Virus record (IMG/VR): IMGVR_UViG_3300027969_000039 | Location: 1-64,000 of that record | Length of the DNA: 64,000 nucleotides | Reading direction: 5' to 3' (one strand) | In this document: piece by piece, positions 20,738-52,135 of the stretch | Layout of the letters: each line of letters starts with the position of its first letter | How positions within the stretch are numbered: the stretch's first letter is position 1 | The notes under the pieces: generated by a model | Seen by the model: the letters and a program-made list of their open reading frames with translations, nothing else | Database searches by the model: none | What the model was told of the DNA's origin: nothing | Program-made: the position numbers and the translations under genes

Positions 20738-21292
20738 TAGGTTCATGTGAACCACAACTAATTGAGCATAAGCAATTGCATGTGCTTTTTTGAATACATA
20801 TCCGTCAGTTCCCTTATCCCATACAGTTTTACTAATCTCAGACCATACTTTACCAATTAAATGCTTCTTACCGGGACGAATAACTGCAAGAAACATAGCT
20901 AATCTTGGGATGCTATCTATGGGTTCTGGCATCTTCTCTAAGTTATAAAACTGATTATTCAGGTGAATCAGTTTCTCAACAAAACTTTTATCTTTCAGTT
21001 TACTCCAATCAGGTTCAACCATCAACTCGTTAAGATGTTGTTCATCTCTGACATTCTCATACACATGAACATTCAATAAGTCTAGTTTAAAATATCCACG
21101 TTTGTCTGCTATTGTATAATCAATACTTGCTATATCTAGCACTGGATCATAGGGGATAGGGGTGACATATACACCAGTGGCATGTTTACGAATAGGATTA
21201 ACATTACGCATTGCCGCACTTGTATGCTTAATTAGTTCAAGCAATCTATCTCTTGAACCAAAGTCAATATCAATATCACTATCTATTCTCAT
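20681..21292 (-). CDS. dnaE: minimal DNA polymerase III alpha-like (family C) catalytic core
   Basis: DIDIDF, KHATGV, GYFKLDLL, AVIRPG, GYVFKKAHAIAYA in only 203 aa. Confidence 0.82.
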   Translation of the reverse strand: MRIDSDIDIDFGSRDRLLELIKHTSAAMRNVNPIRKHATGVYVTPIPYDPVLDIASIDYTIADKRGYFKLDLLNVHVYENVRDEQHLNELMVEPDWSKLKDKSFVEKLIHLNNQFYNLEKMPEPIDSIPRLAMFLAVIRPGKKHLIGKVWSEISKTVWDKGTDGYVFKKAHAIAYAQLVVVHMNLLGHSFDEGDATAFTTALT

Positions 21293-21837
21293 CTTGGTTG
21301 AATCAATCCTGCTTTAATTAATTTCATATATGCAGATTGAACAACAATAGCTTGTCGTTCAGCATCTTCTACCGCTTTGTGTGTCGTAACATGATTACCA
21401 TCTTTAAGACTAACACCAGTGATATCAAATAATGTTCGGGTGTCCCTAACATTATAATAAGGCCAAGGTAGCATTTGACCAGTCTGTCTCCAAGCATGTT
21501 CTATTGCAACCACATCAAATGCTGATCCATGACTCCACGGTTTGCCATGATTTAAACAAAATTTATACAATTGATACATTGCTTCTTTAAATGATACACG
21601 GTCTCTATCACCCATAGCTTCTTCAATAGCCTCTGGGTTTTGTTTACCCCACCATTCTAATGTTGCTTCATTGATACTACGATTATAAATCTCTGTTTGA
21701 TCCTCAATCGTAGGTCTAATCTCAATCTTGTCGATGATTCCTTGACCACGCGGATCAAATAATACTGCACCAATTGTAAGAATCACACAATCTGGTGTTG
21801 TATCAAGTGATTCAATATCTATCATAATATCGGCCAT
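21289..21837 (-). CDS. 3'-5' DEDDh exonuclease (Rv2179c/DUF5051-like)
   Basis: IMIDIESL, HGSAFD, RDTRT, HKAVEDA. Confidence 0.85.
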   Translation of the reverse strand: MADIMIDIESLDTTPDCVILTIGAVLFDPRGQGIIDKIEIRPTIEDQTEIYNRSINEATLEWWGKQNPEAIEEAMGDRDRVSFKEAMYQLYKFCLNHGKPWSHGSAFDVVAIEHAWRQTGQMLPWPYYNVRDTRTLFDITGVSLKDGNHVTTHKAVEDAERQAIVVQSAYMKLIKAGLIQPR

Positions 21838-21839
21838 AA

Positions 21840-22076
21840 CTATCCTTTTTTAGTTTTACTGTAAGCTGTTTCTACCCTTGGCATACCACATTTCGCACAA
21901 TAGCATGTTGCATGGCTTACATGTCCCTTACTCCAGACTTCATCCCATATCTCCCAGTTAGTCCACTGATGCCAACCAAACCTACATTGCAGTGATTGGA
22001 CCGGTTCTAGTTCCTTGAGTATTCTCCAAGTGTTTCGCTTCTCATGTTTTTCACGCTGTTCTATCATGTTTGCCAC
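21840..22076 (-). CDS. small Cys/His protein (possible zinc binding)
   Basis: CRFGWHQW...CYCAKCG. Confidence 0.5.
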   Translation of the reverse strand: MANMIEQREKHEKRNTWRILKELEPVQSLQCRFGWHQWTNWEIWDEVWSKGHVSHATCYCAKCGMPRVETAYSKTKKG

Positions 22077-22339
22077 ATTTCATACATTGTTATCAATCTA
22101 TCATCCCATATCTCTATTGTAACACATCCTCCAGCTAAGGAGAAGTCCCAACCTTGGTGTCTTTCACCGAAATTTCTTCTCATCCATTTTACTATAACTG
22201 CTGGATCTTCTTTATGAAATAAACAATCTCTAAGATAGACTTTTTTATGTCCATCTTTGTAGTTGTTATCCCTGCATAAAGAGGTTGCGGTCTTGGGATA
22301 TGTTACTGCGAATCCTTTTGTGTATGTTGTTATTGCCAT
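22064..22339 (-). CDS. FxLRW-family small protein, copy 10
   Basis: KWMRRNFG..W...IEIWDDRLITMYEMWQT. Confidence 0.6.
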   Translation of the reverse strand: MAITTYTKGFAVTYPKTATSLCRDNNYKDGHKKVYLRDCLFHKEDPAVIVKWMRRNFGERHQGWDFSLAGGCVTIEIWDDRLITMYEMWQT

Positions 22340-22340
22340 A

Positions 22341-22571
22341 TTACCATCTCAATCTTGCTAAAATATAATCACGCTCATATCTAAATTTAATTTTAAATAA
22401 CCAAACTTCATCATATACCCAAGTATACAAACAATGTCTATCTGGGTTTTGTATGTTTCTCAGTATCCAATCTACTAACTCTATCCTTTGTGGTATCGGG
22501 TCATGTTCATCAAGTTTAATAACTATTTCATGCCATCCTGGCTTGATGTTTTCCCAATCTGTATTTCTCAT
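22341..22571 (-). CDS. FxLRW-family small protein, copy 9
   Basis: DWILRN...FKIKFRYERDYILARLRW. Confidence 0.65.
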   Translation of the reverse strand: MRNTDWENIKPGWHEIVIKLDEHDPIPQRIELVDWILRNIQNPDRHCLYTWVYDEVWLFKIKFRYERDYILARLRW

Positions 22572-22843
22572 TGAAACCTCAATAAGAATATCAAATACTT
22601 TTGTTCATCTACTATTTTGTAACCATCAGTAATGTTACCATTAACCATGTTCATCTTTATACCATACTTATTTTCAATGTAAGTTTCAAAATCATAGGCA
22701 TCAAACTGTGTTTTATCTTCCATGAATTCTTTTCTAACTAATTTGAGCAGGTTCCAATACTTCCATCTATTCTTTCTAAAATGAAGTTCAGGATCATCGT
22801 CATCATAATCTTGAAATGATTTTGTTATATTACTCACATCCAT
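22568..22843 (-). CDS. FxLRW-family small protein, copy 8 (divergent)
   Basis: ends IVDEQKYLIFLLRFQ. Confidence 0.6.
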   Translation of the reverse strand: MDVSNITKSFQDYDDDDPELHFRKNRWKYWNLLKLVRKEFMEDKTQFDAYDFETYIENKYGIKMNMVNGNITDGYKIVDEQKYLIFLLRFQ

Positions 22844-23040
22844 CTCAATGCAAAATAGGTGCTATATTCTTCTTTGTAGAAATTGAATATTGTATAACAA
22901 TAAGCTGGTTCAGCAAATGATTCTGCTTTATGATATGCCCAATCAAAATCTACTTTATCTACCCAACCATGTTGTTTCATCTGATGCACTATATCTATAA
23001 TTTCAAGTACTGGTACGTTTGTAACAGTTATAGTTTTCAT
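22834..23040 (-). CDS. FxLRW-family small protein, copy 7
   Basis: ends FNFYKEEYSTYFALRWM. Confidence 0.65.
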   Translation of the reverse strand: MKTITVTNVPVLEIIDIVHQMKQHGWVDKVDFDWAYHKAESFAEPAYCYTIFNFYKEEYSTYFALRWM

Positions 23041-23282
23041 TCCCAGCGTAGTAAAAACATAGTCAAATCTTCATCACGGGTAAGCATTATCTCGCACTGC
23101 TTAATGTTATCTACCCAACGATTACTTCCAGTTTCATCATCATAACCTGAATTGCCGTAATTCTTTTTACACCATTTCTTGATTTCTTTGGTGTCAATAT
23201 CATCTTGACCTTTCCAAGAGACTGTATGTATATTAACTTTGCTACCAAAATAGCGTTCTGTTTTGTGTGTAAATTTGCTCAT
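23037..23282 (-). CDS. FxLRW-family small protein, copy 6
   Basis: KWCKKNYG...LTRDEDLTMFLLRWE; start refined to ATGA overlap. Confidence 0.65.
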   Translation of the reverse strand: MSKFTHKTERYFGSKVNIHTVSWKGQDDIDTKEIKKWCKKNYGNSGYDDETGSNRWVDNIKQCEIMLTRDEDLTMFLLRWE

Positions 23283-23524
23283 GACCATCTCAATATAAAC
23301 CATGCTGCCAATTTAGGATCTTTAACTGTGATAGTAGGAACATATCTAATAGATATGTCACGCGGATCAAACGCTTCATGTGGTTGCGGATACATTCGCA
23401 CACGCTCATAGAACCAGGCATAATTAGGGCTATCTTTAATATCAGTCATATTGCCTCTGCCCACATGTTCGTTTAACCATTCGGTACAACCTGCAGGCAC
23501 CCCCTGTCTAAACTCTACTCTCAT
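23279..23524 (-). CDS. FxLRW-family small protein, copy 5
   Basis: EWLNEHVG...VKDPKLAAWFILRWS. Confidence 0.65.
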   Translation of the reverse strand: MRVEFRQGVPAGCTEWLNEHVGRGNMTDIKDSPNYAWFYERVRMYPQPHEAFDPRDISIRYVPTITVKDPKLAAWFILRWS

Positions 23525-23763
23525 GACCACACCAACGTAAAATGCGTGGCTATTTTGCCGTCATTGAAATGAAAGTCAACCTCTCCCCAGTACCACTCAC
23601 GAATCCACCCTCTGTGGTAATGTTTTTCACACCAATGTGTCATATCATCTACCTTGTCATCCCAATCATTAGTGAGCATATTTGGAGGTGCTTCAATGCT
23701 CACTGTGTATCGGTAATTGTTTTTAATATACCGTGTTGTTTTTCTACGCTGCTTACTGTTCAT
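23521..23763 (-). CDS. FxLRW-family small protein, copy 4
   Basis: HWCEKHY...FHFNDGKIATHFTLVWS. Confidence 0.65.
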   Translation of the reverse strand: MNSKQRRKTTRYIKNNYRYTVSIEAPPNMLTNDWDDKVDDMTHWCEKHYHRGWIREWYWGEVDFHFNDGKIATHFTLVWS

Positions 23764-24041
23764 GACCATCTCAATATGAAAAAGGTTCTGTCTGCTGCAT
23801 CACGGAACCAGTACTTACGATCACTTCCTACCCAACGACAATTAGGTATGCCCCAATGACCGCTGCCAAATGTGTCTATCATCCAAACATTCATATCCAA
23901 CCACTCTATTGCAGAGTAGTTCAATGGTTTGACCCAATAAGGATATTTAGGTTGATTGTCGGCATAACCAGTTTCAAGTCTTTTCATAGTGGTTAATTCA
24001 GATACCCATCTAGCTTCATTCATGGCGCGTTTCTTAATCAT
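23760..24041 (-). CDS. FxLRW-family small protein, copy 3
   Basis: VWMIDTFG...YWFRDAADRTFFILRWS. Confidence 0.65.
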   Translation of the reverse strand: MIKKRAMNEARWVSELTTMKRLETGYADNQPKYPYWVKPLNYSAIEWLDMNVWMIDTFGSGHWGIPNCRWVGSDRKYWFRDAADRTFFILRWS

Positions 24042-24307
24042 AGCCACCTCAACAAGAACATGGTTAGATCCTGTGGTCGTTTAAAAAACCACCTATCGTT
24101 GTAATAGCTATGTGTACCAGAACGGAAAGTATCTTCGCACCATTTAATTTGATCTTGCATCTCACGGCTGAGAATATAAGCCGACGGGGTGCTATGAGTC
24201 AGGCGAACTTTGCGGTTACCGTAATCAATTATCAATACGGGTTCCTCTGTTGTCATGTTCCATGTTATCCCAGACCTGGGACGTTCGTACCGAATCTTGT
24301 GTGTCAT
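24038..24307 (-). CDS. FxLRW-family small protein, copy 2
   Basis: KWCEDTF...WFFKRPQDLTMFLLRWL. Confidence 0.65.
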   Translation of the reverse strand: MTHKIRYERPRSGITWNMTTEEPVLIIDYGNRKVRLTHSTPSAYILSREMQDQIKWCEDTFRSGTHSYYNDRWFFKRPQDLTMFLLRWL

Positions 24308-24531
24308 AAGCAACTTAAATTAAAATGTATAGCATCACGCTCGTCATAGAAATAAAAATCCATATAATCTTCTGTGGCATGCGTGTAATATCTTTCACCG
24401 GGCAAGCCAAAGTGTTCTATCGCATAGCCACATACATCATTCCACTTATATGAAGTATCGCCTTTTACCCATGGTACGCGAACTCTAGTAGCCTGCCTCT
24501 TTGATTGTATCTTTGACTCTTTTTGTAACAT
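24304..24531 (-). CDS. FxLRW-family small protein, copy 1
   Basis: GYAIEHFG...FYFYDERDAIHFNLSCL. Confidence 0.6.
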   Translation of the reverse strand: MLQKESKIQSKRQATRVRVPWVKGDTSYKWNDVCGYAIEHFGLPGERYYTHATEDYMDFYFYDERDAIHFNLSCL

Positions 24532-25186
24532 CCATATCTCGCTTAAACTTTATCGCCCACTGTTCTGGATTTATATAATCAATAATCATTTTAACATGAC
24601 CTTCATTTAATGTATCTAGAAAATGGGTACCACTGTCACTCTGATACAACAACCATGGACTAATCTTGCCCGTTGTAATAGCATAACATAGTTTGTTTGC
24701 ATTCCCATAACGCAACATATCATGTGGTTGTATGTTTGCGTCCTCAGCCAACTTGATGCAAGTCTCTACGCTACGATGTATCGCATCGAATGGATCCTCA
24801 TGCCTTAGATACTCAATGAGATATTTGGTATAGACACTATCGCTACACCAATTGTCAATCTTAATCTGATTCTTTAACAACCATTCAACATATCGTGTTA
24901 TGTTGATAGCATTAATGTTAAGACAATAGTTACCAAACTTAGTAAACGCAGTATAGTATGCACTACGAATGAATTCTTCATAGGTACGATGCTTGCGACT
25001 AGATGTGTTCTTTTTATAAAACTGTACCCAAGTCTGAAATCCAAACTGATTACCACGTAAATCTTTGTCTAGCCATCTACGCTTGTTTTCACAGATGTGT
25101 TTAGCTACCGTGCTTTCTTTCAAGAATTCACGTTTGCAGAATTCACAACCATACTTGACTGGTTCAGTTACCGAGGTCTCTTTCAT
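24485..25186 (-). CDS. hypothetical protein with N-terminal C2H2-like zinc finger
   Basis: YGCEFCKREFLKESTVAKHIC; start refined. Confidence 0.6.
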   Translation of the reverse strand: MKETSVTEPVKYGCEFCKREFLKESTVAKHICENKRRWLDKDLRGNQFGFQTWVQFYKKNTSSRKHRTYEEFIRSAYYTAFTKFGNYCLNINAINITRYVEWLLKNQIKIDNWCSDSVYTKYLIEYLRHEDPFDAIHRSVETCIKLAEDANIQPHDMLRYGNANKLCYAITTGKISPWLLYQSDSGTHFLDTLNEGHVKMIIDYINPEQWAIKFKRDMDVTKRVKDTIKEAGY

Positions 25187-25757
25187 ATTGCTTAAGTTGC
25201 TCGTCTGTGATAGTTTCATTTAGTGTCTCAATGTCTGTTATTTTCATGTTGGGGAATAGTTCTGCTAATCTAAGTTTACGCTTTTGACTATCTACAAACG
25301 CTTGACTTACCTCTGTGATATCATCTTCATGTGCTTTAGGATATATCTTCTTGTAGTATTCTCTTATATCTTTAATCTTTGCAGGCGCTTGTAGTTTACT
25401 TACTTTGGGGCTGATGTTAGGTATCCACTGATGAAATTGTTTTCCCAATGCCGGACTACTAGCACACAACATCAACCATTGTAGTTTAGGATGCTTTTGT
25501 ACATTCTCATTGAATAGATATTTGTTTGCGTGATATTCTACACTCATCAAATAATATCCTTGCAAATCACCTGATGCTTTAATCGCACTCATCCATTGAA
25601 TCATTGTGAATGGTACAAACTTCTTTTGTTGTTCTATTGATAACTTATCATAGAAGCCATAGTCTTTCTTATCTAATGCAGCAAGGACCTCAAACAAGTC
25701 TAAATCTTGTTTATCAAACTTTTCATCAACCGGGATTGCTGCTTTTCTTGTTGCCAT
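25164..25757 (-). CDS. clamp loader small subunit (T4 gp62-like)
   Basis: LFEVLAALDKKD...FVPFTMIQWMS...HPKLQWLML...FHQWI pattern; within replication cluster. Confidence 0.5.
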   Translation of the reverse strand: MATRKAAIPVDEKFDKQDLDLFEVLAALDKKDYGFYDKLSIEQQKKFVPFTMIQWMSAIKASGDLQGYYLMSVEYHANKYLFNENVQKHPKLQWLMLCASSPALGKQFHQWIPNISPKVSKLQAPAKIKDIREYYKKIYPKAHEDDITEVSQAFVDSQKRKLRLAELFPNMKITDIETLNETITDEQLKQYERDLGN

Positions 25758-27855: not shown

Positions 27856-28887
27856 TCAAAGATTCTTCATGCAAGTTGACTTCGCAAGTTCATGCCAGTT
27901 GCCAGGGTTGATCTTTACCAAGTCAGCAATCTTCAACACCATACGCAGGCTGATCTCACGCAATTGATTGCAGTTGGCCCACATGTATTCCATGACACTT
28001 TCTTCCTGCTCTTTAGTAAAAGCATAGTCAACAAACAAGCCGGGGTCAGCATCACGATGCACCTGCTTGATACGCATCATTTTATCACGTTCGGTGTTGA
28101 TAGTCAAATCCAGAAAGTGACAACGACTTTGCAATGCATCCAAATGAGGTTGCATTTTACCTGATTTTTTAGAATCAAACGATTTGTTTGTGATGAAGAT
28201 GATAGAGCCGTGAAAGTTGAAAGTATTGGGCACTCCCTCTTCGCGTAGAATACGTGAATCTTTGTTGTAAGAGATACGCCGTGTCTTGCTAGAATCCAAT
28301 GCACCTTTCAGGATGTTGACCGCATCTTGATCGTCCCAGATATCACAGTCATCAAACACCAACACGTTTTTAGCGTCAGAATATTTGTACAGTAATACGA
28401 ACAAGCCGATAGCAGACATCGCGCCTTTGACAGTCTCAAAACGGATCTTGCGATCTGCAATATGATCAAACATGCTAGCTTTTTCCATCTGCAATGTCAC
28501 GCCGTGACTCTTGCCGACACCGGGAGGGCCTGTCACAATCATAGCACGGATATCACCGTTGATACATGCTTTTGACATCTCATCCAATACTGCAAAACGA
28601 CCTGCGATACGGTCCATCGCTTCCTTATCAGTCTCGGTAGACACTTCTGCCTTTGCCTTGAATTCTACTGTATTGCCTACCACCGTTTCTCCATTCATGA
28701 ATTGAATATCTTCAATGCTTCCGACATTGACACGGACCTGAGGTCCACCCACTGCAAACTGACCATCATTCTTAACAGTAACAAATCCACCCTTCTTACC
28801 AACTTGATAACCTTTGACTAGGGTGAACACTTCACCAGATACAGGGTTATTGCGATAAGAACCAGAGAGAATGCGAATTGTTGACAT
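27856..28887 (-). CDS. AAA+/P-loop ATPase (early)
   Basis: GPPGVGKS Walker A; VLVFDDCD Walker B; IIFITN; ALQSRC. Confidence 0.85.
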   Translation of the reverse strand: MSTIRILSGSYRNNPVSGEVFTLVKGYQVGKKGGFVTVKNDGQFAVGGPQVRVNVGSIEDIQFMNGETVVGNTVEFKAKAEVSTETDKEAMDRIAGRFAVLDEMSKACINGDIRAMIVTGPPGVGKSHGVTLQMEKASMFDHIADRKIRFETVKGAMSAIGLFVLLYKYSDAKNVLVFDDCDIWDDQDAVNILKGALDSSKTRRISYNKDSRILREEGVPNTFNFHGSIIFITNKSFDSKKSGKMQPHLDALQSRCHFLDLTINTERDKMMRIKQVHRDADPGLFVDYAFTKEQEESVMEYMWANCNQLREISLRMVLKIADLVKINPGNWHELAKSTCMKNL

Positions 28888-28920
28888 AGATAAAATCCTT
28901 TATTAACTGATTAAGTAAGC

Positions 28921-28949
28921 ATTATACACTAATGCCCATTTGTTGTCAA
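28921..28949 (-). promoter_or_regulatory. sigma70 early promoter (variant)
   Basis: TTGACA-17 nt-TATAAT followed by family-type leader CTTAATCAGTTAA..AAAGGA. Confidence 0.85.
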
Positions 28950-29164
28950 GCCTTGAGTATGTCCACGATACGCTGATGTATCAGGTCCATTTCAGCCTGC
29001 TCAACATAGAAGTCGGTCTTGGGGTCATAGTACTGACCTTGGGCAGTATCGTAGTACAGGACATGACCGGAGAAATTGAAGGGACCTTCTAGACCCTTGC
29101 GAGGACCATACTTGGTACGCATCTCATCCATTTGCGTCTTGTCTGCGATAACTTTGTAACCCAT
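28946..29164 (-). CDS. small early hypothetical protein (cassette gene)
   Basis: MGYKVIADK...LYYDTAQGQYYDPKTDFYV; AAGGAG RBS; stop TGA inside next TTGACA. Confidence 0.75.
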   Translation of the reverse strand: MGYKVIADKTQMDEMRTKYGPRKGLEGPFNFSGHVLYYDTAQGQYYDPKTDFYVEQAEMDLIHQRIVDILKA

Positions 29165-29194
29165 CAGAAACTCCTTTTGACTGAATAAGACTCT

Positions 29195-29223
29195 ATTATA
29201 TACCCAAAACCATTTAATGTCAA
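29195..29223 (-). promoter_or_regulatory. 29-bp repeated early promoter, copy 1
   Basis: TTGACATTAAATGGTTTTGGGTATATAAT. Confidence 0.92.
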
Positions 29224-29414
29224 CTAAAATCACAAGCCTTATAGACTGCTTCCTGTACTGCGGTATCAGTAACTTCCTCAAAACGCTCGTCCTGAGCCAA
29301 GGCCTTGAGCAATCCTCGAACAACAGACCAACTCAAGTTTTGACTGATTGCCAACTTTACTATGGATCCAACTGCATCATTACCAGCGTCTGTAAACATT
29401 GCGAAATTTGTCAT
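29220..29414 (-). CDS. small early hypothetical protein (cassette gene)
   Basis: 64 aa; RBS; stop in -35 of next promoter. Confidence 0.75.
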   Translation of the reverse strand: MTNFAMFTDAGNDAVGSIVKLAISQNLSWSVVRGLLKALAQDERFEEVTDTAVQEAVYKACDFS

Positions 29415-29448
29415 TTTCTAAGTCCTTTAATTAACTGTCTAAGTATGT

Positions 29449-29477
29449 ATTATATACCCAAAACCATTTAATGTCAA
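29449..29477 (-). promoter_or_regulatory. 29-bp repeated early promoter, copy 2
   Basis: identical to copy 1. Confidence 0.92.
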
Positions 29478-29662
29478 GCCGGTAGAACAACTTCAGTTGG
29501 AATTTGAGACTCACGCCAGGCATTCATATAGGCTTCACGCTCGGCCCGAACCTTGAGGATGCTCCGACTAAAGCGGCGGTCATAGTAGGCCCACGCACCG
29601 CTATCTACCCAGGTTTGGCGGCTGCATCGGACTTTGTTTACCTTGTGTTTTCTCATTTTCAT
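29474..29662 (-). CDS. small basic hypothetical protein
   Basis: 62 aa; stop in -35. Confidence 0.65.
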   Translation of the reverse strand: MKMRKHKVNKVRCSRQTWVDSGAWAYYDRRFSRSILKVRAEREAYMNAWRESQIPTEVVLPA

Positions 29663-29665
29663 ATA

Positions 29666-29932
29666 TTAAGCCCGGTAAGTAGAATAATTACGGATTTTGC
29701 TTTGTTTATTAGCATGGCTTTCGTTGAATTTAATCTCATAACCACGCTGACGTAGTGCATTGATCAGTACTGACAGGTCGCAGTCTTCTTCCAAGAAAGC
29801 ATTGGTACCGTTCTGGTAGCTGTAAGTACTAATCTTATCAGCGATACCAAGTGCTACCAACTTTGCTTTGGGGAAGCGGGCCCATGCATGACCCGGGTCT
29901 GCGAACACTTTGATAGAGATTTTTTTAGTCAT
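29666..29932 (-). CDS. conserved hypothetical protein
   Basis: DPGHAW...ISTYSY...FLEEDCD motif seen in phage/mobile-element proteins. Confidence 0.7.
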   Translation of the reverse strand: MTKKISIKVFADPGHAWARFPKAKLVALGIADKISTYSYQNGTNAFLEEDCDLSVLINALRQRGYEIKFNESHANKQSKIRNYSTYRA

Positions 29933-29943
29933 TTTGAGGTCCT

Positions 29944-30198
29944 TTACAATACTTGAGAAACTGAATAGTTATTCACTTTTGTGATATTTTCAACATGCCA
30001 ATCAATTATAGACTGTTCAGTATTGAGCGGCAATTCTCTAAAGTAAAGAGTTTTGCCTAGCATTACTTTATCTTTTGCGTTTAGCTTAGTGTAGTCACTA
30101 GCAGCAATCAGCAAACAAATTTCTTCGTTGCTGTAGGGCCGCTTTTTGACAGACACTTTAAAATACAAAGTACTGATTGCATTTGCTTTGAATTTCAT
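29944..30198 (-). CDS. small early hypothetical protein
   Basis: 84 aa directly after promoter copy 3. Confidence 0.7.
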   Translation of the reverse strand: MKFKANAISTLYFKVSVKKRPYSNEEICLLIAASDYTKLNAKDKVMLGKTLYFRELPLNTEQSIIDWHVENITKVNNYSVSQVL

Positions 30199-30225
30199 AG
30201 AGACCTTTCAACTGAATAAGACTCT

Positions 30226-30254
30226 ATTATATACCCAAAACCATTTAATGTCAA
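30226..30254 (-). promoter_or_regulatory. 29-bp repeated early promoter, copy 3
   Basis: identical to copy 1. Confidence 0.92.
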
Positions 30255-30469
30255 CCAAGGACCTCAGTCACAGTATAATTATACCGTGTATAACCAACGT
30301 CAGTGGATCCACCATAACCAGCAAAACTCTTATTGTTCATTGCCAACTTAGCAGTACCCTTCCGAGCCATTTTTTGTGCCTCGTTGTACCAATAAGCGCC
30401 TTCAGTTATCCGTGTATGTCCACTAGCGGTTTCACGCCGTACTACATCAAAATTAAAACTGCGTACCAT
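30251..30469 (-). CDS. small hypothetical protein
   Basis: start refined to MVRSFNF; stop in -35. Confidence 0.6.
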   Translation of the reverse strand: MVRSFNFDVVRRETASGHTRITEGAYWYNEAQKMARKGTAKLAMNNKSFAGYGGSTDVGYTRYNYTVTEVLG

Positions 30470-30470
30470 T

Positions 30471-30602
30471 TTATTGCTCCATCGGGTCACCAAGTGTATA
30501 CTCGGTGATCCATTCAATTGTAAAATCTTCACCTCTATGTTCTGCAACATAGATGCAAAGTGCTTCCAGCGTACGGAAAATCAAATCGCCAATTCTATAC
30601 AT
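30471..30602 (-). CDS. 43-aa hypothetical protein
   Basis: MYRIGDLIFRTLEALCIYVAEHRGEDFTIEWITEYTLGDPMEQ; TAATG coupling to upstream gene. Confidence 0.55.
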   Translation of the reverse strand: MYRIGDLIFRTLEALCIYVAEHRGEDFTIEWITEYTLGDPMEQ

Positions 30603-30976
30603 TATGCCACCTTCCGAAAATATTGATAGGGCAAGCCCAGATCATAGCACAGATATTCCCAGTCGCCATTAGCGTTGCTAGCGTCCATGATCCAGCGCAA
30701 TGCAGTCTCACGGTCACGCGCGCCCATGCAGATAGTGTTGGTGACATGCTGCTCAAACTTATCCACAGCTTCCTTCTCAGCAACCTTACGCTGGGCTTCC
30801 TCACGCACGATCACAGCTTCCAAACTTGCAAACTCCAGTTGGAAGTCTTGCAGCGTCCAAGTGCTGGTGTCGATACCACGAGGGCGAACACCATGTGCGT
30901 CCTTGTACATATCCCAGTAGATGCACTGGGCTTGTTCCAAGTCAGACATTTGTTCCCAAGTAGTGAATTCAGACAT
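30602..30976 (-). CDS. conserved phage hypothetical protein
   Basis: IYWDMYKDAHGVRPRG motif; start refined to MSEFTTW. Confidence 0.75.
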   Translation of the reverse strand: MSEFTTWEQMSDLEQAQCIYWDMYKDAHGVRPRGIDTSTWTLQDFQLEFASLEAVIVREEAQRKVAEKEAVDKFEQHVTNTICMGARDRETALRWIMDASNANGDWEYLCYDLGLPYQYFRKVA

Positions 30977-31005
30977 ATTTGTTCCTTTAATCAATCTAAG
31001 CCTCT

Positions 31006-31034
31006 ATTATAGACCCAAAACCATTTAATGTCAA
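31006..31034 (-). promoter_or_regulatory. 29-bp repeated early promoter, copy 4
   Basis: TTGACATTAAATGGTTTTGGGTCTATAAT (1 mismatch). Confidence 0.92.
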
Positions 31035-31228
31035 CCGAAAACAAATTCCCTGACCCACTCAAAACGGGTAGTAGAAGGGACCCACTTGAAGTGTTCCCGC
31101 TTGCGGCTTATCTTCTCAAAATCCATGCAGACCATGACCCAACCCTTCTCAGGGCTGAAGCCAACTGTTTCTGCAACACGGACTACTTCGACCATGCTGC
31201 CGTCTGTCATCTTTGCTACAGTAGTCAT
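31031..31228 (-). CDS. small hypothetical protein
   Basis: 65 aa; GGAG RBS; stop in -35. Confidence 0.7.
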   Translation of the reverse strand: MTTVAKMTDGSMVEVVRVAETVGFSPEKGWVMVCMDFEKISRKREHFKWVPSTTRFEWVREFVFG

Positions 31229-31238
31229 TTTCTACTCC

Positions 31239-31400
31239 TTACGCAAACGATCCACGCACTTCTTTAGCGCCGGGGATTTCTTCACATTCACATACCCAGT
31301 CAGAGAATGATTCGTAGTATCCCACGAAATACTCCGGACGCATTTCAGTCTTGCAGTATGGGCACACTGGCATCACAATTGGTTCTATTTTTTCAGACAT
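31239..31400 (-). CDS. 53-aa zinc-ribbon protein
   Basis: MSEKIEPIVMPVCPYCKTEM...WVCECEE; AAGGAG RBS; below ORF-track cutoff. Confidence 0.7.
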   Translation of the reverse strand: MSEKIEPIVMPVCPYCKTEMRPEYFVGYYESFSDWVCECEEIPGAKEVRGSFA

Positions 31401-31430
31401 AATGTTCTCCTTTAATCAATCTAAGAGTAC

Positions 31431-31459
31431 ATTATATACCCAAAACCATTTAATGTCAA
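31431..31459 (-). promoter_or_regulatory. 29-bp repeated early promoter, copy 5
   Basis: identical to copy 1. Confidence 0.92.
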
Positions 31460-31602
31460 GTTTGGGTAACCTTATTTACCGCAGATTCAGCATCTTTTTT
31501 TCCTGTAGGACCGAAAAAGTGCCATGGATATCCGTGTACTACGGCTACCCACCCGGGGGTTTTCCTGCCGTAGTACACGCTTGCTTTTACCAAAAAAGCC
31601 AT
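31456..31602 (-). CDS. 48-aa ORF starting at the ATG inside a degenerate promoter repeat
   Basis: MAFLVKASVYYGRKTPGWVAVVHGYPWHFFGPTGKKDAESAVNKVTQT; AAGGA 10 nt upstream; stop in -35 of copy 5. Confidence 0.5.
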   Translation of the reverse strand: MAFLVKASVYYGRKTPGWVAVVHGYPWHFFGPTGKKDAESAVNKVTQT

Positions 31603-31608
31603 TTAATG

Positions 31609-31884
31609 TCAATCCTTTTTCATAACATATTCAAACAGGATCCACTTGGCACGATTGAGACATTGACGGGCATCTTCGGCCCGCATGAAGTCAACTTCAC
31701 CGTACTCGGTGCTGACCATTTCTTGGGCGTCACTCATCAGGCTAGCAGCCATCATAGCAGGACCGGAGAATTTGAAAGTGAAACTAGATTCCACAGACTC
31801 ACGCATACCTGCTTCGGTCACGCCATACATGCGGACTTCACGCTTTTGTTTCTCGGTCAGTAGATCATACACGGTTGCAGTCAT
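31609..31884 (-). CDS. small early hypothetical protein
   Basis: 91 aa; AAGGAG RBS; stop in degenerate -35 at 31607-31612. Confidence 0.75.
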   Translation of the reverse strand: MTATVYDLLTEKQKREVRMYGVTEAGMRESVESSFTFKFSGPAMMAASLMSDAQEMVSTEYGEVDFMRAEDARQCLNRAKWILFEYVMKKD

Positions 31885-31917
31885 AAAAAGCTCCTTTAGT
31901 TAACTGTCTATAAGAGC

Positions 31918-31946
31918 ATTATATACCCAAAACCATTTAATGTCAA
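31918..31946 (-). promoter_or_regulatory. 29-bp repeated early promoter, copy 6
   Basis: identical to copy 1. Confidence 0.92.
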
Positions 31947-32818
31947 GTTTTGGTAAAGTCTATTTCCCAGTTTTTTAGATGAAAATAACTAATTCCGTCC
32001 CGTTCCATATGCTTATAAAGCCCTTCTAGGGGAACAGAATCTTGCTCAAAAAAGTGTTCCCAAAGATGATTCAATTTGTTGTCAAGTGGAATTTCAATTT
32101 TGCAAAGTTTGTTGTCATCATCTTTCAACCAGTATTCTGAAAATTTATTTGTTTTATGTTTAACAACAAACTTTTTAATAGGCTTTAAAGTTTTTGTACC
32201 TGACCAGGCTGTAGTGTGTACGGGGAATTCAAACCTTGTATTCAATTCTCTAACCATTTCATCAAATTCAATATCATATTCATAGAATTCAGGTAGACGA
32301 TAAATTATCGGCATCAATTCTTCTCTGACTACTTTACTATCACCGTGGATAAATGTACTTAAATCTTTTCTAAATTTAGTTAACCTTTGTTCACGCAAGG
32401 TCAACACCACGAGTTTCTTGCTGTAATAATCACGGATGACATTAGCCTTATCTCTATCTTCCTGAATCATTTCTCTGAACAAGATACTATCAGTAAGTTT
32501 AGTCGGTCTATCATTGGGATTAGCTAAAATATCAATTTTGTGACTGAGCAGTGTTCGCAATCTATGCCAAGTAACACTCAATGCTAATACATCTTCTGTA
32601 GTCTCATACACTTCATATTTTTTTACATACGAACTATCTTGATACAAGTCATCCCAAGATGTAGTACCATTCAATCCTGCAAGAGTATGAATATTGAGTG
32701 GTGAGGGGTTTTGTGTAGTAGCCCCGATGCTACCTTTAGTGATAGCATTACCATATATTGCAAGTTGTTTCTGTACTGCAAGTTGTTTCTGTAGTATGTT
32801 TATGCTTGAATTAGCCAA
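31943..32818 (-). CDS. hypothetical protein
   Basis: 291 aa; own TTGACA-17-TAAAAT promoter at 32845-32873; stop in -35 of copy 6. Confidence 0.65.
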   Translation of the reverse strand: MANSSINILQKQLAVQKQLAIYGNAITKGSIGATTQNPSPLNIHTLAGLNGTTSWDDLYQDSSYVKKYEVYETTEDVLALSVTWHRLRTLLSHKIDILANPNDRPTKLTDSILFREMIQEDRDKANVIRDYYSKKLVVLTLREQRLTKFRKDLSTFIHGDSKVVREELMPIIYRLPEFYEYDIEFDEMVRELNTRFEFPVHTTAWSGTKTLKPIKKFVVKHKTNKFSEYWLKDDDNKLCKIEIPLDNKLNHLWEHFFEQDSVPLEGLYKHMERDGISYFHLKNWEIDFTKT

Positions 32819-40611: not shown

Positions 40612-45378
<4,767 letters not shown>

Positions 45379-45393
45379 CTATCTATTTAACTG

Positions 45394-47112
45394 TTAAAGA
45401 GTAATGTAACCCCAATTTACTACTTGTGATGTTCCGCTATTGTTTGTAATACCAAATGTAAACACATTAGCAGTTGTAGTACTAACCACAGCATTACTAA
45501 TATTGTTCACAGTTCCAACAATCTGCGTGGGTATCGCTGTAAGTACTAATGCATTACCTGCTGCATAATACCAACCATAACTACTACCTACTACCGGAAC
45601 ATTGGTATTTGTAACAACCACTGTAGCAGTATATGTAACAATACCATTTGGAATATTTCCTCTAACCCATAATGAGTAAGTACCGTTTATAGGAACCGTA
45701 ATACTTACTGTGTTAGTACCTGCTGATAATGTCCAACTACCAGTTGTTGAGCCTGCACCCACACCAGTAGCACCTGTAATGCCTGTACTACCAGTTGCGC
45801 CAGTTGGTCCTGTAGCACCACTAGCGCCAGTTGTACCTACACCAGTAGCACCTGTGGCGCCCGGGCCAGTAGCACCGGTCGAACCATTGTATCCAGTAGC
45901 ACCAGTTGCGCCTGTACTTCCTACTCCTTGTACTCCTGCGATACTAGTATCAAGCCACAATATATTATGATCGACAGGAGCAGTAGATTGAGCAATTAAA
46001 CCTTGCTCACCTGTTGCACCTGTGCTACCTAAACCAGTTGCTCCAATGGCACCTGTTGCACCTGTGCTACCTAAACCAGTTGCGCCCGTAGCGCCTGTTG
46101 TACCTATATAACCAGTTGCGCCAGTAGCACCTGTTGTGCCTATATAACCAGTTGCGCCAGTAGCACCTGTTGTGCCTACAAAACCGGTTGCTCCTGTTGC
46201 ACCTGTACTACCAATATAACCCGTAGCACCCGTTGCTCCAGTTGTACCTACAACGCCGGTGGCGCCAGTAGTGCCTGTGGCGCCAGTGGTACCAATCTCG
46301 CCTGTTGCACCTGTTGCGCCTATCCCAGTAGCGCCAGTGGAGCCTTCATTGCCTATATTACCAGTAGCACCTGTTGCACCATTGTAGCCGGTAGCACCAG
46401 TAGACCCAGCCCCGGCTGGTCCGGTTGCACCTGTTGATCCTGTACCAGATGGTCCGGTTGCTCCTGTACTACCTATTGCACCTGTTGCACCAGTAGAACC
46501 ACCAGCTCCCCCACCGCCACCAGCGAAAGGGGTGCCATTAGCATAGAAATAGTTGTCAGTATAAATTGCGTTTGGTACTACATTGCCACTTGCATTTAAA
46601 TTTATCGTATCAACATTGCCATATATCAATGCATATGATGCTGAAAAATTTGTAGTGTTAAGTGCAGCATTTGCTTGATCCCAAGTTAAACTAGGACTAC
46701 CATCAAAGTTACCTGTATTGTTAAATTGAATCTGTCCATTGCCACCGCCTACTTCGCCGTTACCGGATCCACCACCTGTAACCCAAGTAAGATTACCGGC
46801 TCCATCTGTTACTAAATATTGACCGCTATTGCCACCGGTGACTTTGAATGTACCTATACTTAAAGTACCAACTCGTGTGATATTGGGTTGTGCTGCATTT
46901 ACTACAGAATATGCTAAATTAGCTAATGCTGCCGGTGCAAAATTTGCACCTCCTGCACCGGATAATATTAAATTTCCTGCAACTTGCATGTTAGCTTTTT
47001 GTGTTACAGGGTCTCCGGACATGTTAACAACCGGAAATAACGAATTAGCCGCTATATTGCTACCTATATTAGGTAACTCTGTTATTTTAATTGTTAAATT
47101 AGACGTAGCCAT
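45394..47112 (-). CDS. collagen-like tail fibre protein
   Basis: long G-X-T repeat; N-term KITELP..; start refined to MATSNL with AAGGA RBS. Confidence 0.78.
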
Positions 47113-50028: not shown

Positions 50029-50988
50029 TTATCTATAATAGTCTGAGTTTTTCAACCAGTTGTAGTAGTTTTGAAAGCCTTCTTCCACATCAGTTTTAGG
50101 ATTGAATCCAAAGTCTTGTCTAGCTGCATCAATATTCAATGCTCCGCGACTTGGAAAATCAATATCTTTTGCGCCAACTTCTAAATGACCGCCACCAGCT
50201 AATTCTAGTGCCATCTGTGCAGCCTTGAGTAGGGTGACGCTGTGGCTCTTTGTGATGTTGTATGTCTTGTTCTCTGTATTGTCGCTTAATGCTGCTGCTA
50301 CAATACCATCAGCCGCATCATCTACATAAGTGAAGTCTAGTTTTTCATGCTCACCATTGACTTTCAGTACTTTGCCCCGCATTGCTGTGAGTAAGAATTT
50401 GCTGATGACACGATCCTCTACATCGAATGGTCCATAAACAGCACTGGGGCGAATAATAGTATGAACAAGATTAGTACGGCGAGTATAGTCTTTAACAAGC
50501 CATTCACCCGCGAGTTTGAGTATTCCATATTGTCCTTGTGGTTTGCATTCATAATCTTCCTTTACATCATCTTTAAAATCACCATATACCATAGACGAAC
50601 TAATATAGATGAACTTACGAACATCGTAATTGTTACTAGATTCTAATAGATTGAGTAATCCTTCGCTCATAGTACGGCTACCTAATGCTGGATTACTATT
50701 GACAACTTTCTGTCTAGGAAAGCTAGCCATGTGAATCACGATCTCCGGTTCTTCAATTCTAAAAATGTTATCTATTTCTTTAGCGTATGTGATATCTGTC
50801 ACATACTGAAAACTCGTATCACCAATCTTCTTTTGTCGTTCAGCCATGAGATAATCAATCTCACTTTGAGGGATGATACCATAGTTAGTCTTGTTATCAA
50901 TTATTGATACTGTATGTCCTTGATCCTGTAATCGTTTTACTACATTGTGACCGATTAGGCCCATACCGCCTGTTACTAATATGTTCAT
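50029..50988 (-). CDS. NAD-dependent NDP-sugar epimerase/dehydratase
   Basis: GGMGLIG, SSSMVYG, YGILK, RPSAVYGP, DFTYVDD. Confidence 0.9.
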   Translation of the reverse strand: MNILVTGGMGLIGHNVVKRLQDQGHTVSIIDNKTNYGIIPQSEIDYLMAERQKKIGDTSFQYVTDITYAKEIDNIFRIEEPEIVIHMASFPRQKVVNSNPALGSRTMSEGLLNLLESSNNYDVRKFIYISSSMVYGDFKDDVKEDYECKPQGQYGILKLAGEWLVKDYTRRTNLVHTIIRPSAVYGPFDVEDRVISKFLLTAMRGKVLKVNGEHEKLDFTYVDDAADGIVAAALSDNTENKTYNITKSHSVTLLKAAQMALELAGGGHLEVGAKDIDFPSRGALNIDAARQDFGFNPKTDVEEGFQNYYNWLKNSDYYR

Positions 50989-51230
50989 TGGAATTTTAAT
51001 TTAAAATAAGTGTGGTCGATAGCTTTGAGTTTTGCTGTTATAGTATATACATGCCCATAATTGAATTGATCAGAAGTTCTATTCCACATTGGAACATCTA
51101 CTGCATTATCCATGACCCATCTACCTGCTTCTGATTGTTGCCATTCCCATAATGGATGTGCTATATACAAATCGGGATCTTCTACATCTCCCATTTTTAT
51201 TGTATGTACTACGCACTCTACTATATTCAT
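50985..51230 (-). CDS. small hypothetical protein, distant FxLRW-family member
   Basis: GRWVMDNA...HTYFKLKFQ. Confidence 0.5.
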   Translation of the reverse strand: MNIVECVVHTIKMGDVEDPDLYIAHPLWEWQQSEAGRWVMDNAVDVPMWNRTSDQFNYGHVYTITAKLKAIDHTYFKLKFQ

Positions 51231-52135
51231 ACTGCCATATCAGCTTTGATAGCAGTATGGCATTTATAATCAACTAACTCAATATCATCCATCGTGAATT
51301 CTTCAATAGTTTTTATATCCTTATTGAGTTTCAATACTGGTAATGGTAATGGATCACGGCTCAACTGCTCTTTAACTTGTTCAACATGATTAGTATAGAT
51401 ATGTGTGTCACCAGTACTGATGACTAATTCACCAACACCTAACTCGCATACTTGTGCTATTAAATGAGTGAGTAACGCATAGCTACTAATGTTAAAAGGT
51501 AAACCAAGAAACACATCCACACTACGCTGGTACATATGGCAAGATAATTCTTTATTCTTGTTGACATAGAATTGACATAAGACATGACACGGTGGCAAAG
51601 CCATCTGGTCTAACTCACCCGGGTTCCATGCAGTAAGTATGTGTCTACGACCATTAGGGTCTTTTTGTATACCCTCTATTAGAATTTTTAACTGGTCTAC
51701 TTCTTTATGATGTATACTACCTTGACGATTGTAATGATTGCCAAAGTCATCTTTAAAAACTTCAGTTTTATGTGATACAGGAGTAAGCCAATGTCTCCAT
51801 TGTACTCCATATACACGACCTAAGTCCCCATGGAACTTTGCTTTATCTTTCCAGTAAGGAGCATAAGCATTTGGTGTCCATATGGTAACTGCCCCTGTTC
51901 CACCATGTGTAATTTCTGCTAATCTGCGTTCATCTCCGCTTCCTTCGATGAACCAAAGTAGTTCTCCTACACACGCTTTCCAAGCAAGTTTTTTAGTAGT
52001 GACGGCTGGAAAACCCCTACGCAAATCAAAGCGAAGGTGATGTCCAAACATACTAATAGTCCCAGTGCCAGTTCTATCATCTTTTGTTTCTCCATTAGTT
52101 AGAATATCTTGTAATAATTCTAAATATTGTTTCAT
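51227..52135 (-). CDS. thyA: thymidylate synthase
   Basis: DDRTGTGT, ELLWF, LGRVYGVQWR, MALPPCH, YQRSVDVFLGLPFNI, GDTHIY. Confidence 0.97.
   Translation of the reverse strand: MKQYLELLQDILTNGETKDDRTGTGTISMFGHHLRFDLRRGFPAVTTKKLAWKACVGELLWFIEGSGDERRLAEITHGGTGAVTIWTPNAYAPYWKDKAKFHGDLGRVYGVQWRHWLTPVSHKTEVFKDDFGNHYNRQGSIHHKEVDQLKILIEGIQKDPNGRRHILTAWNPGELDQMALPPCHVLCQFYVNKNKELSCHMYQRSVDVFLGLPFNISSYALLTHLIAQVCELGVGELVISTGDTHIYTNHVEQVKEQLSRDPLPLPVLKLNKDIKTIEEFTMDDIELVDYKCHTAIKADMAV

Follow-up and report, generated by a model that had tools for sequence, protein, structure and literature searches.

The window analysed here, i.e., the whole stretch of 64,000 nucleotides under study, represents positions 1–64,000 of the 303,057-bp single viral contig IMGVR_UViG_3300027969_000039 from freshwater metagenomes, which belongs to a T4-like jumbo phage. 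Ten head-to-tail open reading frames (ORFs) of 68–93 amino acids (aa) occupy the minus strand at 22064–24531, in agreement with an initial annotation of this DNA that had listed ten consecutive small ORFs of this size. Profile comparisons show this array to be made up of paralogues, with c1 and c3 as probable members, that diverged from one another long ago and share one small domain specific to phages, for which the name 'LRW domain' is given here. In case of c9, c8, c7, c6 and c5, the start was placed at the ATG overlapping the upstream stop codon as ATGA; the longest-ORF starts (TTG, GTG or ATG) are probably too long, and the restarted lengths (89, 93, 80, 81 and 81 aa, respectively) agree with those of the orthologues and, for c8, also with an Atlas record. 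The genes are given below from the first to the last, together with E-values of a family hidden Markov model (HMM), which was built from 148 outside representatives without any window sequence and applied to the complete set of 1414 genome ORFs, selected hhalign results, and the ratio of nonsynonymous to synonymous substitution rates (dN/dS).

c10, 24304..24531, minus strand: first array gene; 75 aa; ends in FNLSCL (LRWL in orthologues); HMM 2.5e-7; hhalign 98 %, 2e-13; dN/dS 0.28
c9, 24038..24307, minus strand: 89 aa from the ATG over the c10 stop; ends in FLLRWL; HMM 6e-13; present in few close relatives only; dN/dS 0.24
c8, 23760..24041, minus strand: 93 aa; most canonical copy; ends in FILRWS; HMM 8e-21; dN/dS 0.33
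c7, 23521..23763, minus strand: 80 aa; ends in FTLVWS; HMM 3e-13; sporadic in relatives; dN/dS 0.32
c6, 23279..23524, minus strand: 81 aa; ends in FILRWS; helix 1 and the last strand separated by a long insertion; HMM 2e-7; sporadic; dN/dS 0.28
c5, 23037..23282, minus strand: 81 aa; most conserved copy; ends in FLLRWE; HMM 4e-18; orthologues 81–96 % identical in most relatives; dN/dS 0.11
c4, 22834..23040, minus strand: 68 aa, the shortest; ends in FALRWM; HMM 2e-4 over the C-terminal two thirds of the profile; dN/dS 0.32
c3, 22568..22843, minus strand: 91 aa; most diverged copy; ends in FLLRFQ; acidic N-terminal part; HMM 0.36, rank 11 of 1414; dN/dS 0.16
c2, 22341..22571, minus strand: 76 aa; ends in ARLRW; HMM 2e-8; hhalign 96.5 %, 9e-10; bridged to canonical members by the relative P0203; dN/dS 0.20
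c1, 22064..22339, minus strand: last array gene; 91 aa; keeps WMRRNFG and ends in MYEMWQT; HMM 0.019, rank 10; dN/dS 0.38

The C-terminal motif that had been recorded initially is borne out at the level of the genome: L[RK][WF] at most one residue from the C-terminus occurs in 11 of the 1414 ORFs (at least 40 aa), and 7 of these 11 are located in the array (hypergeometric P 2e-14). Eight of the ten copies carry the domain at the protein end with the W no more than two residues from the C-terminus; c3 has F for W, c10 reads LSCL, and c1 ends in MWQT. The central motif W-[CML]xxx[FY]-G, likewise ascribed to most copies, is strictly kept in c1, c5 and c8 and loosely in c3, c6, c7, c9 and c10, but in c2 it is reduced to the W, and in c4 it is absent.

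Pairwise BLASTP similarity among the copies is weak, an E-value of 1e-4 being reached by c5–c9 and c8–c9 only, and the best local matches between paralogues are short with at most about 38 % identity. An HMM iterated within the genome joins only c5, c7, c8 and c9 (c6 at 0.011). The family HMM built from outside sequences places the array ORFs at ranks 1–8, 10 and 11 of 1414, eight of them with significant E-values (8e-21 to 2e-4) and the other two, c1 and c3, with E-values of 0.019 and 0.36 at ranks 10 and 11 (P 3e-6 for both ranks). Orthologue profiles of these two copies align in register with the family profile in hhalign (c1: 63.7 %, P 6.7e-5, 53 orthologues; c3: 64.5 %, P 6.3e-5, 32 orthologues), with a degree of circularity in that the outside set had been gathered with a profile including c1 and c3. 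Both are probably strongly diverged family members. Profile–profile comparison had been named beforehand as the test that could refute mutual similarity; hhalign alignments are in register for c10, c2, c1 and c3, and searches of Pfam, PHROGs and NCBIfam gave no informative family.

A profile search of protein collections, in line with the HMM search proposed together with the first description of the array, revealed the extent of the family outside the genome. The profile of the ten copies retrieved 298 proteins from a 90 %-clustered collection, and in 1.84 billion proteins the family is represented by 419 clusters when grouped at 50 % identity. Its members are invariably 56–144 aa long, with the match running to the C-terminus, and the nearest Atlas clusters are 93–100 % viral; from these database matches, the LRW family appears to be phage-only. 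Searches of whole records with the family profile yielded 31 matches in the Sinorhizobium phage Phosso, 4 in Atu_ph07 and 2 in PA5oct, and none in T4, CBB, 121Q and Xoo-sp13. In the cultured, 469-kb phage Phosso (PV764938.1), the copies (loci L094, L096, L098, L100 and L102–L105) form several clusters among tRNA genes and small hypothetical genes. On one metagenome contig of 4.6 kb, 12 or more of the 17 called genes are significant copies (E up to 1e-3).

No informative family was obtained for the ten genes and 139 family members from Pfam, PHROGs and NCBIfam, a few relatives matching, singly, function-less PHROGs. Every annotated copy examined (two Phosso regions and PA5oct) is labelled 'hypothetical protein'. 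The family profile retrieved nothing below E 0.9 from the PDB sequences, and with the array region, c9, c8 and P0157 as queries no match was obtained in GenBank phages at the nucleotide or protein level. The LRW family, undescribed so far, has no Pfam or NCBIfam family, named function or solved structure.

The family consensus proceeds from an aromatic strand via W-x-E-M-x-x-W-C-x-E-x-F-G, a variable loop and R-W to the terminal F-W-F-R-D-E-x-D-x-T-x-F-x-L-R-W-S. Conservation in c8 numbering is 99 % for W53, 80 % for C54, 92 % for G59, 70 % for R69, 96 % for W70, 95 % for F79, 73 % for E82, 92 % for D84, 97 % for F88, 91 % for L90, 98 % for R/K91 and 97 % for W92. The near-invariant positions (W53, G59, W70, F79, D84, F88, L90, R/K91 and W92) are mostly aromatic or hydrophobic; the Gly and the Asp are located at helix ends (helix-capping), and two basic residues (R69, R/K91) are conserved beside tryptophans. 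No catalytic-looking residue set is present among the conserved positions of the family alignment. It seems that the invariant residues build the core of the structure and not an active site.

AlphaFold2 models were made for c8 and c9 with the family alignment. The c8 model reaches a predicted local distance difference test (pLDDT) score of 88.5 and a predicted template modelling (pTM) score of 0.74, with residues 21–93 at 94 or above, and contains the elements E21–26, E35–40, H44–58, E70–73, E76–79 and H82–92 (E, strand; H, helix). For c9, pLDDT is 69.6, with the C-terminal half at 76–92. Both models share one topology, which sustains the single small alpha/beta scaffold supposed initially: the LRW domain is predicted to be a two-layer beta-beta-alpha-beta-beta-alpha domain of about 70 aa that is always protein-terminal. 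Foldseek searches of the PDB with the two models gave no match to a solved or annotated fold (E 0.7 or worse), and in fold searches of BFVD, AFDB clusters, AFDB Swiss-Prot and the ESM Atlas all matches were either to uncharacterised viral proteins or to generic alpha/beta proteins at noise level.

The same order of elements is found in DCoH (pterin-4a-carbinolamine dehydratase, PCD), for which 1uso_B superimposes with Z 5.2 over 63 residues (root-mean-square deviation 2.9), and ACT domains and BMC shell proteins likewise are two-layer alpha/beta sandwiches. However, the LRW domain has neither sequence similarity to DCoH nor its catalytic His triad, and the score is below the level of unrelated models, so that only a common arrangement is indicated. 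A DCoH/PCD- or ACT-like identity was accordingly rejected (best Z 5.0–5.6, Foldseek E >0.6, no Pfam match).

Orthologues specific to each paralogue are present in related phages, with 45–98 % identity as opposed to at most about 38 % in local matches between paralogues, and the best match of a window copy is in no case (0 of 10) another copy of the window, in keeping with the old, diversified family that had been postulated. In Phosso, 14 of 19 copies have their best match in another Phosso copy. Judged from this difference, the window set is old and the Phosso set partly a recent expansion. At least one family ORF is present in 84 of 87 related loci (L001–L087), in the IMG/VR loci downstream of a gene for a conserved 244-aa protein, and up to ten copies per locus are significant; arrays differing in content thus occupy one and the same site. 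The order c10-(c9)-c8-(c7)-(c6)-c5-c4-c3-c2-c1 is conserved; c10, c8, c5, c3, c2 and c1 are widespread, and c6, c7 and c9 sporadic even in close relatives. LRW genes behave as accessory genes, gained and lost by phages, and from comparison of the loci the array site is a gene-insertion hot spot.

Purifying selection acts on every copy, as determined by the dN/dS analysis that had been suggested for the array: median values are 0.11–0.38 for all ten copies and 0.10–0.13 for the flanking genes. The array genes are therefore real. Relative to the flanks, selection on most copies is relaxed two- to threefold, with c5 (0.11) and c3 (0.16) near flank values. Orthologues share a conserved N-terminal part, over synonymous distances (dS) spanning 0.14–1.06, whereas the N-terminal parts of different paralogues are unrelated. 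The isoelectric points (pI) of the copies range from 5.1 to 9.5, which argues against one common charge-based ligand; four copies have a net negative charge of at least 1.

At eight of the nine internal junctions, stop and start codons overlap, mostly as ATGA, and c2 and c1 are one base apart; an ATGA overlap likewise joins the end of c1 to the following gene. From this close packing, the array looks like one translationally coupled operon. No terminator-like sites are present on the coding strand inside the array, and promoter-like sites in the region are no commoner than in shuffled sequence. The best such site on this strand (26292–26264) is located upstream of the three conserved genes preceding the array. 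We infer one long transcript with translational coupling. The latter pattern is typical of complex subunits, and a hetero-oligomer had been considered in the initial annotation, taken here as one assembly with each paralogue in a fixed place; DCoH/PCD, BMC shell and ACT proteins do oligomerise, the structural matches to them being at noise level only. However, the number of significant copies in close relatives varies from 3 to 10, c6, c7 and c9 being sporadic, and elsewhere the copy number ranges from 1–2 in PA5oct to 31 in Phosso. Since c6, c7 and c9 come and go independently in close relatives, the obligate form of such an assembly is weakened in particular, and the idea as a whole is now considered very improbable.

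Little nucleotide repetition had been noted in the array, which holds in general but not for the gene junctions, where repeats of 14–22 nt (TTGAGATGGTCATGA) comprise the L-R-W-S codons and the next ATG. The Leu codon of the LRW motif is TTG in 7 of 8 cases, compared with 22 % of the Leu codons in long ORFs genome-wide. At the junctions in 22339–24310, the sequence at −9 to −6 relative to the next ATG reads GAGA or GAGG as a result of the codons TTG AGA or AGG, and upstream of long ORFs GAG peaks at the same position (modal Shine-Dalgarno), with GAGA and GAGG enriched 5–7 fold there. From these counts, the conserved Leu-Arg ending and the ribosome-binding site of the next cistron appear to use the same bases. 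The junction repeats could also support unequal recombination, and together with the frequent gain and loss of copies this would fit selfish or near-neutral cassettes that spread by recombination at the junction sequence with no benefit to the phage. Purifying selection on every copy, the maintenance of the N-terminal parts over the dS range given above and the conserved order c10..c1 across relatives speak against such cassettes, which are hardly to be expected here.

Outside the array, three further ORFs of the genome were considered as family members. The initial annotation had proposed an eleventh copy, which proved not to belong to the family:

50985–51230: ORF of a separate conserved small-protein family with 56 homologues; core MGDVEDPDLYxAxPLWEWQ

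This ORF lies between an epimerase-like gene (50029–50988) and a thymidylate synthase gene (51227–52135) and is absent among the 31 best family-HMM matches listed (E up to ~8). Its profile aligns with the LRW family at 14.9 % in hhalign over 21 columns of the last helix only; it is thus excluded because its conserved core differs and the similarity is limited to this helix. The ORF at 75868–76149 ending in LLRWM was rejected as a chance ending (hhalign 1 %). Outside the window, a 66-aa ORF on the minus strand at 134013–134213 (L115:714–914) ends in FYFEEERDYTAFVLWKQ (HMM 1e-3; hhalign 63 % over 16 columns); doubtful as it is, this ORF may represent a truncated or very diverged relative matching the last strand and helix only.

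The array is part of a replication block. On one side, genes for a DnaB-like helicase, a primase, a DNA-polymerase piece and an Rv2179c-like exonuclease are present; the other flank consists of the gene for the 244-aa protein, genes for two more conserved proteins and that for a UvsW-type helicase, the latter sharing 49–56 % identity with those of Phosso, Atu_ph07 and the Rak2/121Q/GAP32 group. The immediate neighbours are as follows.

24485..25219, minus strand: gene for the conserved 244-aa protein (phrog_11058, function-less), which always precedes the array; 432 IMG/VR relatives; its end is overlapped by the start of c10 by 47 nt
21840–22076: 78-aa non-member ORF between c1 and the exonuclease gene; Trp-rich with a CxxC...CxxC-like ending; ATGA overlap with c1; family HMM E 18
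21289..21837, minus strand: Rv2179c-like 3'-5' exonuclease gene (PF16473, 8e-33); conserved far boundary of the variable region, at the same position in related loci

In related phages (L006:5319–6008 and L006:7316–7711, also L007), the array is interrupted by a gene for a PhyH-like dioxygenase, and the exonuclease gene is followed by an Endonuclease_7 gene. The GC content is 0.43–0.45 at 28000–32000 and 42000–46000 and ~0.36–0.38 in the rest of the window.

The conserved position between the genes for the UvsW helicase and those for the exonuclease, polymerase piece, primase and helicase may suggest that the LRW proteins are replication or transcription factors, i.e., small proteins with an architectural or specificity role on phage DNA or RNA, and the conserved Arg-Trp pairs would agree with such nucleic-acid binding. 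A precedent is provided by Bacillus phage G, for which a jumbo-phage survey describes an expansion of a zinc ribbon to ~35 copies, read as transcription factors or DNA binders (PMC7824862). Expansions of this type resemble the LRW arrays in that many diverged copies of a tiny domain are present in phages >200 kb and function is deduced from context. The fold, however, is different, the LRW domain lacks metal-binding residues, and many uncultured freshwater phages carry it in addition to Phosso, Atu_ph07 and PA5oct; in the passages of the survey matched by term search, the LRW family was not found (PMC7824862). Nucleic-acid binding is moreover at variance with the pI range of 5.1 to 9.5 and the net negative charge of four copies, with the location of the Phosso copies among tRNA and small hypothetical genes, away from replisome genes, and with structure searches of the models, which retrieved no known nucleic-acid-binding fold or motif. 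A role of this kind is therefore regarded as unlikely.

A subset of relatives, about 8 % of the family representatives, carries an additional segment ahead of the LRW domain. In 10 of the 148 representatives (P0163, P0213, P0263, P0245, P0220, P0189, P0166, P0229, P0145 and P0146; among the loci are L089:6001–6327 and L090:2738–3091), this segment is 31–63 % identical to the major capsid protein of the window phage, which is of the T4 type. The segment corresponds to capsid protein residues ~24–101, and those of P0229, P0145, P0146 and P0166 take in part of the propeptide (e.g., 'KALLAE' in P0145 versus 'KQLLAE' in the capsid protein). Residues 13–58 of P0163 match capsid genes of 109 cultured phages, whereas its LRW part matches nothing in those phages. 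The fusion genes are located in small-gene arrays or beside recombination genes, away from the capsid gene.

Aligned to T4 gp23, the shared motif represents residues 93–122, which we take to be the Gol peptide, and is the most conserved N-terminal motif of T4-type capsid proteins. The Gol peptide activates the Lit protease, an abortive-infection protease. As described, Gol is a short peptide within gp23 (PMC9712102, PMC8829019). While this region is an integral part of gp23 in T4, in the LRW relatives the same motif is a free-standing module fused to the N-terminus of the LRW domain, far from the capsid gene, and it never occurs in the window copies: a capsid-like N-terminus is present in 0 of 10, and none matches PF07068 (Gp23). 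Of the 139 relatives, 6 match PF07068, each at profile positions 2–34 only and via the added N-terminal segment. Derivation of the LRW domain itself from the capsid N-terminus was rejected, as hhalign of the unfused family against capsid N-termini gave 0.06 %. The capsid motif is thus an added module, because the unfused family bears no residual likeness to the capsid N-terminus, and the fusions support an architecture of a constant carrier plus a variable N-terminal module. Complex prediction for c8 with capsid protein residues 1–130 (score 0.01) gave no answer either way.

Capsid-derived N-termini, some including part of the propeptide, could alternatively serve to load the LRW proteins into the prohead. 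The proteins would then be packaged in the virion, perhaps trimmed by the prohead protease, and injected with the DNA to act before phage gene expression; one member indeed matched phrog_6005, 'virion structural protein'. The T4 internal proteins IPI, IPII and IPIII are small injected proteins encoded at a variable locus and carrying an N-terminal capsid-targeting sequence. LRW genes likewise form variable small accessory sets with turnover, a subset of them having a capsid-derived N-terminus, but there is no sequence relation, and the window copies have no capsid-like N-terminus and are encoded in the replication block. Also in general, the LRW genes are found in replication or early-type small-gene arrays outside the structural module. 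In PA5oct, gp237 carries no note of detection by electrospray ionization tandem mass spectrometry (ESI-MS/MS) while many of its neighbours do, small proteins being easily missed by this technique, and gene-level expression or proteome data for gp237 were not found in the main text of the PA5oct paper. Packaging is accordingly held to be rather improbable.

On the other hand, one may speculate that the LRW domain is the constant carrier of a variable N-terminal 'bait', and that the arrays represent decoy or blocker libraries against host immune sensors or host factors recognising short, conserved phage peptides, an idea that is put forward here only as a long shot. The relatives with the Gol-type motif would be its readable examples, being located in early-type arrays and presumably made before the capsid protein. 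Possible targets would be Lit-like or CapRel-like sensors, which detect capsid proteins via short motifs (bioRxiv 10.64898/2026.01.04.697583).

Overall, the most likely reading, albeit a tentative one, is that LRW proteins are accessory protein-binding modules for host takeover or counter-defence. Each product would be a small soluble module in which a constant aromatic-core scaffold occupies the C-terminal two thirds (WCxxxFG helix, RW strand, FxFxxExDxxxFxLRW), whereas the N-terminal part and the surface would be specific to each paralogue, and the proteins would act on host or phage proteins during infection. The role in host interaction or anti-defence guessed at initially is compatible with the data. 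Several points weigh against this reading of LRW proteins as protein-binding modules. No anti-defence, toxin or regulator family was matched by the ten genes and their relatives in Pfam, PHROGs and NCBIfam. The best VIA-align matches in the PDB (BMC shell, DCoH/PCD, ACT and eIF1/YciH; Z 5.6–5.8) do not reach the tool's background of 7–8. R69 and R/K91, the sole candidates for a common ligand site, could form such a site rather than belong to the core. The position in the replication block is equally compatible with a replisome or nucleic-acid role. Finally, two read runs labelled RNA are probably DNA and hold only relatives, and thus provide no evidence of expression.

In large phages, a considerable share of the coding capacity goes into small genes without known function, and the LRW family represents one of the bigger such blocks. 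Now that this family has a profile, a modelled fold, a delimited domain and carriers in culture, its function becomes directly testable. The cultured carriers include PA5oct, growing on Pseudomonas aeruginosa, and Phosso, growing on Sinorhizobium meliloti, the latter being a tractable model. The capsid-motif fusions, in turn, offer a concrete handle on how phages might handle the sensing of conserved capsid peptides.

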